Part shown: in pieces, positions 25,801-48,903 of the stretch | How the letters are laid out: each line of letters starts with the position of its first letter | Position numbering within the stretch: position 1 is the first letter of the stretch | Origin: Podarcis melisellensis | Taxonomy: Eukaryota | DNA length: 55,027 nucleotides | Assembly (NCBI GenBank): GCA_964234715.1 | Contig: OZ174280.1 | Direction: 5' to 3' (one strand) | The notes under the pieces: model-generated | What the model was told of the DNA's origin: nothing | Databases searched by the model: none | The model's input: only the letters and a program-made list of their open reading frames with translations | Position numbers and translations under genes: made by a program

Positions 25801-26572
25801 GTTATGCTTTGGAGGCATTTATTTAATATTCAAAAACAGCTGTTTATTTTTAAAGATAGTTTGGGTGTGCACAGTAGTCTGTTCCCATTTCATGTTAACT
25901 AACAGCTGTTGATGTTTTTATTTCACAAGCTTTTTGTCCTGTTAATAGATAAATTGAAGAAGACCCAGCCAGATGTGTGGGGGTATAAATAAATAAATAA
26001 TAAAACAAAGTTTATGTTTTCACTTTCCATTTAGTGCCAGAACTATTGGATGTGTTCCCACTCTTGTATGGTTTGCATTTGATCATTGGTGACTAATTTG
26101 ATATTTGAACTATTGCTGAAAGACCCACTTATATTTTAGTGCTGTTTCATCTATGGCTGTTCTGAAATAGAGTATAACTTCTTCACTCACCCATTGATTT
26201 CAGTGGGTCTGCTCTGAGTATGACCTAGTTGGATACCACCCCATTTCTTCAAATTCAGCATAGGAATGGACTGGATTTTAAAACATAATTAATCAAAAGT
26301 TTCCAGTTCCTGTTGATGTTAAAGAAATGCTACATACATGCTGATATGTCATTAATGGTGGTTGGTTTTTTGTTTGTTTGTTTTTTTAAAGTTTGTTGGG
26401 AAATATCAGTCGGAATATTGATAATGAAAAACAAATTCACATACAGTATCTATGGTTCATGTCAGATCCACTGTGAAGGGGTATCATCTTCTCTGTGGTG
26501 GTATCTCATCTGTGGGATGCCTTCCCTTCAGAGGTACAGTTGCTTCCATTTCCATCTCTCTATTCATTCGCA

Positions 26573-27565
26573 GCAAACTATGGCAAGTTCTTAAAAAAAT
26601 GGGAGGGTCTGATCACCTCATCTGTCTCCTGAGAAATCTCTATGTGGAACAAGAAGCTACAGTTAGAACTGGATATGGAACAACAGATTGGTTCAAAATT
26701 GGGAAAAGAGTAAGACAAGGCTATATATTGTCTCCTTGCTTATTTAACTTATATGCAGAATTCTTCATGCGAAAGGCTGGACTGGATGAAACCAAACCAG
26801 AATTAAGATTGCTGGAAGAAACATCAAGAACTTCAGATATACAGATGACACAACTTTGATGGCAGAAAGTGAGGAGGAGGAATTAAAGAACCTCTTAATC
26901 AGGGTGAAAGAGGAGAGAGCAAAATATGGTTTGAAGCTCAACATCAAAAAAACTAAGATCATGGCCACTGGTCCCATCACCTCCTGGCAAATAGAAGGGG
27001 AAGAAATGGAGGCAGTGGGAGATTTTACTTTCTTGGGCTCCTTGATCACTGCAGATGGTAACAGCAGTCACGAAATTAAAAGATGCCTGCTTCTTGGGAG
27101 AATAGCGATTACAATCCTAGACAGCATCTTATAAAGCAGAGACATCACCTTACCAACAAAGGTCCGTATAGTTAAACTATGGTTTTCCTAGTAGTGATGT
27201 ATGGAAGTGAGAGCTGGACCATAAAGAAGGCGGATCACCAAAGTATTGATGCTTTTGAATTATGGTGCTGAAGGAGACTCTTGAGAGTCCCATGGACTAC
27301 AAGAAGATCAAACCTATCCATTCTTAAGGAAACTGGAAGGACAGATCCTGAAGCTGAGGCTCCAATACTTTGGCCACCTCATGAGATGAGAAGACTCCCT
27401 GGAAAAGACCCTGATGTTTGGAAAGATTGAGGGCACAAGGAGAAGGGGATGATAGAGGACGAGATGCTTGGACAGTGTTCTCGAAGCTATGAACATGAGT
27501 TTGACCAAACTGCGTGCTCTGGTTCATGGGGTCACAAAGAATCGGACACGACTAAACAACAACAA
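26573..27565 (+). mobile_element. BovB (RTE) LINE, 5'-truncated and decayed
   Basis: EQEATVRTGYGTTDWFKIGKRVRQGYILSPCLFNLYAE, RYTDDTTL, GLKLNIKKTKIMATGPITSWQIEGEEME; tail GGACACGACTAAACAACAACAA. Confidence 0.95.
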
Positions 27566-45010: not shown

Positions 45011-45435
45011 TGTGAGTGTTCAGAACTTAAATGGTTAAGGGTTCTGAGTGTGCGTCACATTCTGACGTCAGACGTAAGCCGGGAGGAGACAGAAGCTTTT
45101 AGAAGCTAAGGAGGAGGAGTTTTTCCCTGTACTTTCACTTCTCTCTGTGTATCTGTGAGAGAGAAAGACGTGCCTTTGGATATGGCTGAAAGAAGCCCCG
45201 GTCTTTGTAGCTGAAATGTTTCAATAAAGAGCTGTAAATAGACGGAGCTGTCTGTGTGTGCTTGCCAGAAGAAGGAAGTAAGTCTGCTTTACACCGCTGT
45301 GTGTTCTACTCTGCTAAGCCGTGACCTGAAGGGAGCAACAGTGGCGCAGCTTTGAAGAAGTGTGCCGGACCCGTTATAAACTGCTGATTGACGATCATAA
45401 AGTAATCAGGTGTCACGGCAGATCGATCTCCAAGA
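45011..45435 (+). repeat. 5' LTR
   Basis: TGTGAGTG...CCAAGA; differs from the 3' LTR only at 45063 and 45244; AATAAA at 45223-45228. Confidence 0.96.
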
Positions 45436-45755
45436 GGTTATGGAAGGTCAGCCAACGCTCGTAAAGCGGTCGGTGTGAGCTCCAGGAATGTCTTTGAAGT
45501 TAGCGTTCTGAGGCTGAGGGGCCGTCGGAGGCCAACGGGAGCTGACTGGATGCCGGAGAGCAAGAATGATTAATTGCCTGCTTCTAAGAGGCAATGAGAG
45601 CTGCTGATACAGAGAGCTGGCTGGAAGCTGAGAAGCAGCTGGAGCTAAAAGCAGCTGGAATCGTTACTCCAAGCAAGGGAGAGCCGTAGGAGCTGGTACT
45701 GAGCACTGAGTACGGAGTAAGTACAGCTTGGGGCACCTTGGGAGAACGGGAGAAG

Positions 45756-48506
45756 ATGGCCAAAAGCCAGAATATACCTCTGGAAAAGCTCACTCTAAAG
45801 AGTTGGGCAATATGGAGCAGAAGAATAAGGGGATGGTTCCTAGTCGAGGGGCTTTGGGAAGCAAGCCAATGGGAGCCAAAATCACCCCTTAGCTGGCCAG
45901 CAGCTGGAACAGGCGTTGCAAGCTGTGGGGCTGCGTGGGCTGAAGATAGCCAGCAGAGAATGCAACTTGAGCTGGATATGCTCAGAGCATGCGTTGATGA
46001 ATCGCTGAAGCCTCATCTTGAGGGCGTTGAATCGGCCCAGGCCGCCTGGCAGGCGCTGAGGAGTGTGTGTGAAAGCTCAGCGGGAGCCAGGCCAGGGGGG
46101 GCTGGAGGAAGCCCAGGAGAGGCTGAAGGATGCCCAGAAAGCCCAATGGGGGCTGGGACAGTGTTGGGGAGCTGTTGTAATGCTTCTACACGTCTGTGTG
46201 ATGGACTGGGTCCTGGAGAGGCTGGACTGGCAGGCCCTGTTCCCGATGTCTTGGCCTCTAGGAGCGCTAGTGAGCAGATCGGGGGGGCGAAGAGTTCCAA
46301 AGGCAAGTTTAAAGGACTTTTCACTTGTGCTGAAGCAGAAAGGAGCTTCAGGGGGGGCCAGGCTGGTGGGAGGCGCCGTTCCAGAAGGAGGAAGGCCAGG
46401 CCAGCTGGCAGCAGCCCCGGGCAGTGTTTTTCCACTGGAGTTCAACGTCTGCGTGGCAGTAGCCCCCACCGGAGCAGAGAGCCGAGGCAGGATGTTGGCA
46501 AGGACACTTCTCATGGGAACCAGACGGGTTTCCGTGGCAACAGGCCTGGGAAGACAGGCAGGCGTGGAACTGAACCAGGTGGTCGTGGTAAACAGGAAGA
46601 GTCTTATCAAGTTTCTGCTAGCATGGCTGTGTTTGAGAACTGTTGTGTGGAAAATTCCGAGCTCTGCTTTGTTATTGACTCTGCAGCTAACCGCAACATG
46701 GTTCCTGAGACACCTGCAGTCACGTTGTGGAATTGCAAAGCAATTTCCACAGGACAAACTGTTTTATTTGCAAATGGACAGCGGAAAAATGTCACTAACT
46801 GTGGTACATTGTTCCTTTCTGTTTTGCAGGAGCAGGTCGAAGTGTGCACCATCCCAGAGATGCCTCACTGTTTGTTATCTGTGCCTTATTTGTTAAAAAA
46901 GGGTTTTCAGGTTTGTTTCCAGGGGGATTCCTGCACAATCTCCAGAGAAGGAAGACGACTTGTTGAAGTGAAACGGGGACAGAATGATCTTTTCGTTCTT
47001 AAAACGTCTCTTGGGGGTGAGGGGAAGGTTGAGAAAGCACAAGCGTCGCGTGCTACAGTTCCCAACCAGCGTACTACAGTTCCCACTCATGATGCCTCAT
47101 GTGCATGCGTATGGCATCAGAGAACAATTCATGGGTCGGTAGAGGACTTGCAGACTCTGCCCGAGGTTGCCAAGGGGTGTAGGATTCAAAATTGTGGAAG
47201 TGCCATTAATTGTGACACTTGCAAGCAGGCAAAGGTGAGAGGGTGCAGTTACCCAAAGGTGGAACGGGTTACCACCAAACCTTTTGAGCTGGTACACATA
47301 GATCTGTCCAATTCTGTCCAGGAACAGAGTCTAGGGGGAGCCAGGTATCTGCTGACTTTTCTGGATGATTTTTCGCAGAATTCCTGGAGTCATGGTCTCA
47401 GATCCAAGGAGGATGCAGCACAGCTGATCAAGAGCTGGATTGAGGGGGTGGAACTAAGGTTCTCCACCAGAGTGCAAGCGATCATCAGTGACAGAAATGC
47501 TAGGTACACTGGTTCTGCTTTGCAGAAGTTCTTTCACGAGAAAGGGATACGTCACACAGTTCAGAGGGGGGTGGCAGAGCTGAGGAGTGGAGCTCTGGTT
47601 CAGGCAGCACAGGTGATGCTTACAGAGTCTGAGTTACCTCCACAGTTTTGGCTGGAGGCGGCTAGAGCTGCATGCTTCACCTGGAATAGGACCTACAATT
47701 CGCTGGTAGGTGACACTCCGTTTTCTCTGTTGAATGGCCGCAAACCCCAGGTTCACTTTCTGCGCAAGTTTGGGTCTCCTGCGATTGTCTCTGCGCCTGA
47801 GGCTTTGCGAGGGCCAGATGGAGCCAAATTCCAGAAAATGATCTTCTGTGGGTATGAGCCAGAAGCCCGTGCATGGCGGTTTGCTTACCCTTCAGGTGAT
47901 CAGAGTAAGGTGCTGATCAGTAAACACGCTGAGTTCTGTGAGGAGGATGTAAAGTCAAAGTCTCCTGTCAGGCGTGATGTTCTATCAGAATGTCTCTCTG
48001 ATCCAGAAGACAGTTCTGATGAGGCGGAAGAAGAGGCTGAGGCTGCTGATGACGACCAGGTCACTGACCAGGGTCAAGAGCAGAATGTGGCATCTCCACA
48101 AGTTGTAAAGAGAGTGCCCAAAAGTGAGCCTAGTTCTCCTGTGAGTGTGATGGAGAGGATCCGAAGACGCTTTAAGTCAGAGGGGGAATCCCATGATGCA
48201 GAGGACACACCTGCTGATCAAAGTGAGTCAGAGGGAACACCTGAGTTTGTGCCTAGGAGGTCCAGTCGCACAACAAAGGGTATTCCACCAGAGAGGTACC
48301 AGGCCACAGGTGCGTGGGTAAGTTTCGCACAGTGCGATTCTGAGAGTTGTGAGGTGGTTCCACAGTTGCCTAACAGGGACGCCAAGAGAGGGCGCAAGGC
48401 ATTGGGGAAGGGATTGATCTCACAGAGTCTTGCTGAGGATGTTCCACAGGTGCAGTCGGAATCCAACGCAAGGGGGGGTGTGAGTGTTCAGAACTTAAAT
48501 GGTTAA
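45756..48506 (+). CDS. Copia-type Gag-protease-integrase polyprotein, 916 aa from the first ATG, no RT/RNase H
   Basis: Copia Gag N-terminus (IPLEKLT..WAIW...EGLW; AQAAWQAL), protease-like FVIDSAA, HHCC (WHQRTIH...CDTC), integrase core (PFELVHIDL...LTFLDDFS...ISDR...GVAE...FWLEA), MIFCGY, RRSSRTTKGIPPERY. Stop codon lies inside the 3' LTR. Confidence 0.9.
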   Translation: MAKSQNIPLEKLTLKSWAIWSRRIRGWFLVEGLWEASQWEPKSPLSWPAAGTGVASCGAAWAEDSQQRMQLELDMLRACVDESLKPHLEGVESAQAAWQALRSVCESSAGARPGGAGGSPGEAEGCPESPMGAGTVLGSCCNASTRLCDGLGPGEAGLAGPVPDVLASRSASEQIGGAKSSKGKFKGLFTCAEAERSFRGGQAGGRRRSRRRKARPAGSSPGQCFSTGVQRLRGSSPHRSREPRQDVGKDTSHGNQTGFRGNRPGKTGRRGTEPGGRGKQEESYQVSASMAVFENCCVENSELCFVIDSAANRNMVPETPAVTLWNCKAISTGQTVLFANGQRKNVTNCGTLFLSVLQEQVEVCTIPEMPHCLLSVPYLLKKGFQVCFQGDSCTISREGRRLVEVKRGQNDLFVLKTSLGGEGKVEKAQASRATVPNQRTTVPTHDASCACVWHQRTIHGSVEDLQTLPEVAKGCRIQNCGSAINCDTCKQAKVRGCSYPKVERVTTKPFELVHIDLSNSVQEQSLGGARYLLTFLDDFSQNSWSHGLRSKEDAAQLIKSWIEGVELRFSTRVQAIISDRNARYTGSALQKFFHEKGIRHTVQRGVAELRSGALVQAAQVMLTESELPPQFWLEAARAACFTWNRTYNSLVGDTPFSLLNGRKPQVHFLRKFGSPAIVSAPEALRGPDGAKFQKMIFCGYEPEARAWRFAYPSGDQSKVLISKHAEFCEEDVKSKSPVRRDVLSECLSDPEDSSDEAEEEAEAADDDQVTDQGQEQNVASPQVVKRVPKSEPSSPVSVMERIRRRFKSEGESHDAEDTPADQSESEGTPEFVPRRSSRTTKGIPPERYQATGAWVSFAQCDSESCEVVPQLPNRDAKRGRKALGKGLISQSLAEDVPQVQSESNARGGVSVQNLNG

Positions 48507-48903
48507 GGGTTCTGAGTGTGCGTCACATTCCGACGTCAGACGTAAGCCGGGAGGAGACAGAAGCTTTTAGAAGCTAAGGAGGAGGAGTTTTTCCCTGTAC
48601 TTTCACTTCTCTCTGTGTATCTGTGAGAGAGAAAGACGTGCCTTTGGATATGGCTGAAAGAAGCCCCGGTCTTTGTAGCTGAAATGTTTCAATAAAGAGC
48701 TGTAAATAGACAGAGCTGTCTGTGTGTGCTTGCCAGAAGAAGGAAGTAAGTCTGCTTTACACCGCTGTGTGTTCTACTCTGCTAAGCCGTGACCTGAAGG
48801 GAGCAACAGTGGCGCAGCTTTGAAGAAGTGTGCCGGACCCGTTATAAACTGCTGATTGACGATCATAAAGTAATCAGGTGTCACGGCAGATCGATCTCCA
48901 AGA
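48479..48903 (+). repeat. 3' LTR
   Basis: Follows the PPT AAGGGGGGG; 423/425 identical to the 5' LTR. Confidence 0.96.

Follow-up and report, generated by a model that had tools for sequence, protein, structure and literature searches.

Evidence for a semi-autonomous copia lineage lacking reverse transcriptase in lacertid lizards

Can a copia retrotransposon that has lost its reverse transcriptase (RT) continue to transpose, and to encode proteins under selection, in a vertebrate genome? The question is raised by an element in a 55,027-nt stretch of DNA from the lizard Podarcis melisellensis (assembly GCA_964234715.1, contig OZ174280.1), hereafter called the window. An initial annotation of this DNA placed a young copia-type element, with nearly identical long terminal repeats (LTRs) and one open reading frame (ORF), at positions 45011-48903, and suggested that this copy had been reverse-transcribed recently by an RT acting in trans and might represent a non-autonomous yet protein-coding family. 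The analysis described here supports that interpretation, and we assign a probability of roughly 0.65 to the reading that the element belongs to a semi-autonomous, RT-less copia lineage of lacertid lizards. Its boundaries, its ORF and the sequences adjoining the 3′ LTR are as follows.

45011-45435, + strand: 5′ LTR, 425 nt, starting TGTGAG and ending TCTCCAAGA; identical to the 3′ LTR at 423 of 425 positions
45756-48506, + strand: single ORF of 916 codons plus stop, comprising a Gag remnant, GC-rich filler, protease, integrase, linker and pre-RT stub
48433-48469, + strand: tail, 37 nt between the deletion junction and the polypurine tract
48470-48478, + strand: polypurine tract (PPT), AAGGGGGGG, directly before the 3′ LTR
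48479-48903, + strand: 3′ LTR, 425 nt, with the stop codon of the ORF inside it at 48504-48506

Alignment of the two LTRs bears out the identity first noted for them, the two mismatches both being transitions. The extent of the ORF likewise agrees: reading from the ATG at 45756 (or from a TTG at 45738, which would give 922 codons), the frame crosses the PPT and stops 28 nt inside the 3′ LTR. As expected of a Ty1/copia element, the LTR pair encloses an internal region with a primer-binding site (PBS, at 45436) and a PPT. The protein domains that are present, namely protease, integrase and a pre-RT motif, stand in copia order as far as they go. Pfam searches of the ORF recovered the integrase domains rve (6.7e-9) and SH3_retrovirus (9e-12), together with sub-threshold matches to Pol_BBD and gag_pre-integrs. 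RT (RVT_2) and RNase H, both of which a complete Ty1/copia element encodes, gave no match in the ORF even at E = 1, and the internal region, at 3043 bp, is too short to accommodate them. The reported absence of both enzymes from the window copy is thus confirmed.

The protease-integrase part of the ORF was compared exhaustively with 1.84 billion representative proteins. One close relative emerged, P0006 (XP_077785850.1, "uncharacterized protein LOC144327940") of Podarcis muralis, and examination of the surrounding DNA revealed a second complete element.

L001:3394-7320 (P. muralis OZ076959.1): complete sibling element around P0006

The sibling has LTRs of 426 nt with 0 mismatches and TG...CA ends, a perfect flanking 5-bp duplication (ACAGT), a PBS (GGTTATGGAGGTCAGCC), a PPT (AAGGGGGGGG), a tail equivalent to that of the window element, and a single open ORF of 954 codons. 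The two elements can be aligned from the leader to the 3′ LTR, with approximately 85% DNA identity from protease to tail and approximately 74% in the LTRs, the 5′ LTR of the window copy being homologous to the LTR of L001 over its entire length. When the whole ORF and its integrase-to-tail piece were compared with 5.8 billion proteins, this sibling protein was again the only match, and the exact ORFs were absent from the protein collection. Protein-pattern scans and a DNA junction scan of metagenome and viral contigs returned nothing; these contigs contain almost no lizard DNA, so that the result is uninformative on copy number.

The position of the deletion can be defined by comparison with full-length relatives, which the window ORF tracks through the integrase, the acidic linker and the motifs RRSxRxTKGxPPERY and KW..AM.KEL..M..LG. 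Alignment to P0170, a protein of Podarcis lilfordi whose gene resides in locus L004, extends to residue 942 at the protein level and to about residue 946 at the DNA level; the RVT_2 domain of P0170 begins at 948. The junction falls between 48432 and 48433 (DNA homology to L004 ends ...AGTCTTG), after which 37 nt remain up to the PPT, with RT, RNase H and the original stop codon all gone. In L001 the junction is the same at every codon, a 3-nt indel excepted. A junction unique to the P. melisellensis locus would have spoken for a private accident; instead, an independent insertion at a different locus shares it, and the deletion is neither private to the window locus nor an assembly artefact. 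Because L001 shares the junction, the deletion must be older than the split of the two subfamilies. Both deleted copies bear marks of retrotransposition, L001 in its identical LTRs and target-site duplication, the window copy in near-identical LTRs without a duplication. As L001 lacks RT and yet displays all the marks of a fresh insertion, RT must come from elsewhere, as the proposal of supply in trans had envisaged.

We then asked what the remaining ORF encodes and whether it is maintained. Its protease, integrase and linker regions were delimited as listed below; the linker peptide singled out in the initial annotation, RRSSRTTKGIPPERY, is encoded at 48255-48299.

46671-46907, + strand: protease region, from a below-threshold Pol_BBD match, alignment and a motif tally
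47058-47948, + strand: integrase, from Pfam (rve and SH3_retrovirus) and alignment to four autonomous copia proteins
47058-47234, + strand: zinc-binding N-terminus of the integrase
47274-47567, + strand: catalytic core of the integrase
47736-47948, + strand: SH3-like domain of the integrase
47949-48432, + strand: acidic, serine-rich linker and pre-RT stub, ending ...KALGKGLISQSL, from homology to P0170

The frame from protease to tail (2016 nt) contains 0 in-frame stops, versus 15-53 in the five other frames. Across the 612 codons of this region, the window copy and L001 differ with a nonsynonymous divergence (dN) of 0.122 and a synonymous divergence (dS) of 0.373, giving a ratio (omega) of 0.33; the corresponding proportions of differing sites are pN 0.112 and pS 0.297 (Fisher p = 5.5e-18). 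The 283 differences between the copies would be expected to create about 12 stop codons, and none is observed. The ORF for protease, integrase and linker is under purifying selection, as would be sought in a semi-autonomous element. The description of the element as protein-coding therefore holds for these regions and fails for Gag, which is degenerate in the window copy. The junction region, with a dS of 0.33, has diverged to the same degree as the remainder of the ORF, which makes the deletion as old as the split between the window copy and L001. Since the LTRs of both copies are near-identical, the divergence between them arose along transposing lineages and not through decay in place.

In a protease-integrase tree the window copy falls inside a copia clade, forming with L001 a group supported at 100/100 that lies within a 99/99 clade containing the autonomous lineages P0170, P0004 and P0160. 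The stem branch leading to the RT-less pair measures 1.1 changes per site, versus 0.43-0.53 in the autonomous lineages, and is thus about 2.4 times longer. Both RT-less copies also depart from the consensus at 33 of the 125 positions at which four autonomous copia proteins are invariant, among them the protease motif DSG, which is DSA in both. We read this pattern as constraint that was probably relaxed or altered, not absent, through a long non-autonomous history.

The two RT-less copies differ most in Gag. In the window copy, the region first labelled as Gag consists of two parts.

45756-46094, + strand: Gag remnant, corresponding to the N-terminal third of the copia capsid domain only
46095-46424, + strand: GC-rich segment, standing where the C-terminal part of the capsid and the CCHC knuckle belong; no detectable homology

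The label is apt for residues 1-113, which hhalign matches at 97.5% to positions 3-98 of a 284-position profile built from 19 copia Gags, and which are 23-30% identical to each Gag tested, that of L001 included. It does not extend to the rest: Pfam finds no match within the N-terminal 295 aa of the ORF, and the CCHC knuckle is missing, so that neither Retrotran_gag_2 nor the knuckle, both present in L001, is found in the window copy. With degeneration of Gag in its subfamily, the window copy probably depends on a helper for Gag and capsid as well as for RT.

The GC-rich segment is of unexplained origin, with both flanks 85-90% identical to L001 and a global identity to L001 within it of 33-46%. 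The interval 46077-46487, with a GC content of 62%, is free of stops in two forward frames, and the openness of the segment consequently carries little weight. No homologue of residues 114 to about 230 was detected in any frame by tblastn with seven Gags, and a frameshifted Gag was rejected on this result. RNA or DNA editing was rejected, as the substitutions are spread over all types and identity to L001 drops to 33-51%. Capture of a known domain was likewise rejected, the segment having no Pfam match in four frames and the protein atlas offering weak copia-Gag leads below 0.9.

In L001, by comparison, Gag is of genuine copia type (Retrotran_gag_2, 1e-30, and zf-CCHC in Pfam), and a search with it led to P0170, a Gag-protease-integrase-RT polyprotein of 1376 aa. 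Residues 1-207 of the L001 Gag are identical to P0170 at 95% of protein and 91% of DNA positions (dN 0.031, dS 0.40). The DNA match begins 8 nt upstream of the ATG, and identity falls abruptly to about 40% past residue 210; outside the Gag capsid, L001 is no nearer to P0170 than to other copia elements. On this sequence comparison L001 is a mosaic, in which an RT-less backbone carries the capsid domain of an autonomous lineage. Mosaics of this type usually arise when the template is switched between two RNAs packaged in the same particle. If the L001 Gag arose in this manner, both RNAs travelled together, which would make the P0170-like lineage, with whose RNA the RT-less RNA was apparently co-packaged, the best candidate for the helper. 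At the P0170 locus (L004), the PBS is GGTTATGGAAG, the same as that of the window element, and the LTR ends, TGTGGAG...TCTCCAAA, resemble the TGTGAG...TCTCCAAGA of the window LTR. This full-length copy is itself damaged at its 3′ end (L004:7080-7131; P. lilfordi OX395127.1), where the PPT and most of the 3′ LTR are lost and the ORF continues directly into what is left of that LTR, its last 26 nt.

The LTR and leader of the window copy contain the following sequence features.

45063-45070, + strand: U3 motif TGACGTCA in the 5′ LTR
45223-45228, + strand: AATAAA in the 5′ LTR
45436-45459, + strand: PBS, GGTTATGGAAGGTCAGCCAACGCT, immediately after the 5′ LTR
45534-45624, + strand: conserved 5′ leader block, 90% identical to L001:3895-3981, where the flanking LTR is about 74% identical

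The sequence GGTTATGG comes immediately after the 5′ LTR in the window copy and in L001, L002, L003 and L004. It presumably pairs with the anticodon loop of initiator tRNA-Met. Priming at the anticodon loop of this tRNA, and not at its 3′ end, is the mode used by Drosophila copia and yeast Ty5 (PMC10886601), which differ from the window element in being autonomous and in inhabiting distant hosts. Judging from its conservation, the leader block may act in cis as a packaging or dimerisation signal.

Several further features of the LTRs were recorded. The U3 motif is a perfect cAMP-response-element palindrome that is conserved in the L001 LTR, and one of the two LTR differences converts it to CGACGTCA in the 3′ LTR (48531-48538). 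CpG deamination was considered as the origin of the two differences and set aside, as their direction is unclear in the comparison with L001; they are reported as transitions only. The U5 end of copia LTRs (window 45352-45392; L003:4720-4779; L004:2770-2813) resembles, on the sense strand, the 5′ half of initiator tRNA-Met. The likeness is clearest in L003, GGTGGCGCAGCGGAAGCGT, and lies just 5′ of the PBS that presumably pairs with the anticodon loop of the same tRNA. It may reflect a U5-PBS helix; folding of the U5-PBS region gave z-scores of -0.3 to -0.8, which support no structure, and neither Rfam nor ARAGORN identified a tRNA or another known RNA in the LTRs or loci.

Taken together, these data suggest the following history. 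One ancestral event would have removed the whole RT-RNase H segment of a lacertid Ty1/copia lineage, starting 1-2 residues short of the RVT_2 domain and ending about 37 nt ahead of the PPT. The deleted element would thereafter have spread as a semi-autonomous parasite, its RNA retaining the LTRs, a PBS for the anticodon loop of initiator tRNA-Met, the PPT and the conserved leader, and being reverse-transcribed, presumably, by the RT of an autonomous copia inside that element's particles. The lineage continues to encode its own protease-integrase polyprotein, which purifying selection maintains and which evolves faster than in autonomous relatives. The recombinant capsid domain of L001 points to particles shared with a P0170-like autonomous lineage, and the window copy would be a young member of a Gag-degenerate subfamily. 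A more ambitious version, in which the RT-less lineage, with its selected protease-integrase, swaps Gag modules with an autonomous helper in shared particles as part of a long-lived multi-component lacertid copia system, is tentative and in our view rather unlikely to be the full truth. If true, it would describe a cooperative set of partial elements and not a simple pair of parasite and host.

A number of observations weigh against the semi-autonomous reading. The case for a lineage is built on two copies, the window copy and L001. The window copy has GTGAG on its 5′ flank and TTTCC on its 3′ flank, and its LTR terminates ...CCAAGA, that is, TG...AGA rather than TG...CA; it thus has neither the 5-bp target-site duplication nor the TG...CA ends seen in L001. 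The activity of its protease and integrase is in doubt from their sequences, since both are altered at near-universally conserved positions. The protease active-site motif is D-S-A (46677-46685), where 104 of 111 related copia proteins have D-S-G. The integrase retains its D, D, E triad and its HHCC residues, with adjacent conserved positions altered; the motif DxGxE[F/Y], with GE in 153 of 160 relatives, reads N..R in the window copy. The omega of 0.33 represents moderate constraint only. The helper candidate comes from another species, and the body of its LTR is dissimilar to that of the window LTR. No autonomous element with related LTRs was found in databases that hold few lizard repeats. 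Finally, the 5′ border of the deletion corresponds in autonomous relatives to G followed by GTGTGT, which allows an origin from spliced RNA, possibly a repeated one.

This last point underlies the strongest rival explanation, according to which the RT-less copies are recurrent by-products of full-length masters with the same LTRs, whose spliced or internally deleted RNAs are occasionally packaged and retrotransposed. On this view the junction common to both copies would mark a conserved splice, and purifying selection would be acting on the masters. In the autonomous loci L004 and L003 the 5′ border of the segment missing from the RT-less copies falls exactly between ...AGTCT(C)TTG and GTGTGT, and in L003 a polypyrimidine tract and CAG lie just upstream of the PPT. 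This acceptor-like sequence (L003:4395-4425), in which a stop codon is followed by TTTTGTTTTTTGTATTGCCAG, ends 2 nt before the PPT and may indicate splicing into a subgenomic RNA of the kind that Drosophila copia makes. On the opposing side, GTGTGT is poor as a splice donor, and the encoded residues L-G-V-F dictate its sequence. Furthermore, a master of the window copy would carry the same degenerate Gag and hence would not be autonomous, and masters would not readily account for the 33 shared changes at invariant sites or for the lengthened stem branch. No full-length relative exceeding about 42% identity in protease-integrase was present among the 1.84 billion representative proteins. We consider this explanation unlikely; it keeps the weight that it has because the databases searched hold few lizard repeats. 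That the lineage began with a single such event of splicing, on the other hand, is compatible with the semi-autonomous reading.

A second alternative accepts the family but concerns the window copy itself. Five mutated flank positions are not a credible explanation for the missing target-site duplication, given that the duplication of L001 is perfect and that the window LTRs differ at two sites only. Most likely, then, the window copy is a recombinant of two near-identical family copies and not an untouched single insertion. Either ectopic recombination or an assembly join would require at least one further copy in the genome. In such a chimera the two LTR differences would not date an insertion, and with the duplication missing, 2/425 is not strictly an insertion age; it would otherwise correspond to roughly 1-3 million years on squamate neutral rates. 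The statement that this copy was reverse-transcribed recently is accordingly upheld by its near-identical LTRs and weakened by the lack of a duplication, without which it may not be a simple single insertion. The contrast between GTGAG and TTTCC here and the perfect 5-bp duplication of the sibling favors a chimera; against one, the 55-kb window holds a single occurrence of the element and no second copy, and the internal sequence bears no sign of a join. As the account of this locus to be set in place of the preferred one, a chimera is improbable.

The remaining alternative, a loss of RT by deletion at the window locus alone or by assembly collapse of a full-length copia, has in its favor the prior plausibility that deletions are common in old LTR elements, and it is refuted, to the point of being negligible, by the recurrence of this junction at a different locus and in a different sequence record, in an element that has diverged by about 15% and has its own target-site duplication.

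How does the semi-autonomous lineage compare with known systems? Protein-coding non-autonomous LTR elements are well described in plants and among the mouse intracisternal A particles (IAPs), and to our knowledge vertebrate copia elements have hardly been studied beyond their presence or absence. The principle of RT-less semi-autonomy is known; what is new is the host group, the architecture, in which protease and integrase are kept, RT-RNase H is lost and Gag is optional, and the exchange of Gag. We know of no previous description of this borrowed-enzyme lifestyle for a vertebrate copia.

The closest plant counterparts are the wheat families RLG_Sabrina_SA and RLG_WHAM (partner RLG_Wilma), which like the window family have lost RT and retain an intact ORF for some proteins (PMC9744471). 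Their long co-evolution with an autonomous partner is recognised by shared PBS and LTR termini, not by overall similarity (PMC9744471). These plant elements are of the gypsy type and retain Gag-protease without RT or integrase; in the vertebrate copia described here, by contrast, protease and integrase persist, only RT-RNase H has been lost, and Gag is degenerate or borrowed. Barley BARE2 is a copia element that needs the Gag of the related autonomous family BARE1 and has chimeric relations with this helper (PMC9744471), but it has kept RT and lost functional Gag, whereas the window copy has no RT and a degenerate Gag as well. Among vertebrates, the mouse IAP 1-delta-1 is an LTR element with an internal in-frame deletion that is non-autonomous, requires proteins in trans and is nevertheless very active, its own fusion protein aiding retrotransposition in cis (PMC6466679). 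It differs in being a betaretrovirus-like endogenous retrovirus, in having parts of gag and pol deleted with RT left, and in having full-length masters in the same genome. Tomato TARE1 was also considered as a comparison and discarded as irrelevant, having no RT deletion.

Copia elements occur in fish, amphibians and reptiles and are absent from birds and mammals (PMC4350176). In squamates they have been active recently (PMC4350176; PMC4657000), and a copia insertion causes amelanism in the corn snake (PMC4657000). The autonomous squamate elements, including P0170 of P. lilfordi, the P0160 lineage, Repbase Copia-6 of Anolis and the corn-snake OCA2 insertion (PMC4657000), resemble the window element in a PBS of the GGTTATGG type, a similar PPT, LTRs of about 410-425 nt, the same domain order up to the pre-RT motif and a protease-integrase in the same 99/99 clade. 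They differ from it in encoding RT and RNase H within polyproteins of about 1380 aa, and their protease-integrase regions are 38-42% identical to that of the window copy.

If the preferred reading is correct, an amniote copia lineage lost RT-RNase H and kept spreading with its protease and integrase under selection, and one of its subfamilies took over the Gag of an autonomous lineage. This replacement of Gag would constitute direct sequence evidence for co-packaging with a helper, and the lineage would provide a naturally occurring case in which to determine what proteins an LTR element needs to supply in cis. For practice, dating by LTR identity can mislead for copies without a target-site duplication, and genome annotation can take such ORFs for host genes, as exemplified by LOC144327940. 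This NCBI host-gene annotation (XP_077785850.1) covers the 3′ part of the sibling ORF (L001:6001-6948), in an element that lies antisense within a large RhoGEF/spectrin-repeat gene. Transcription is a possible implication of this gene model.

Elsewhere in the window, Pfam returned no match for the long ORFs located at 17.2-18.1 kb and 21.6-22.6 kb. A short ORF at 26452-26856 has a weak match to RVT_1 (E = 0.0017) and is probably a fragment of a long interspersed nuclear element.

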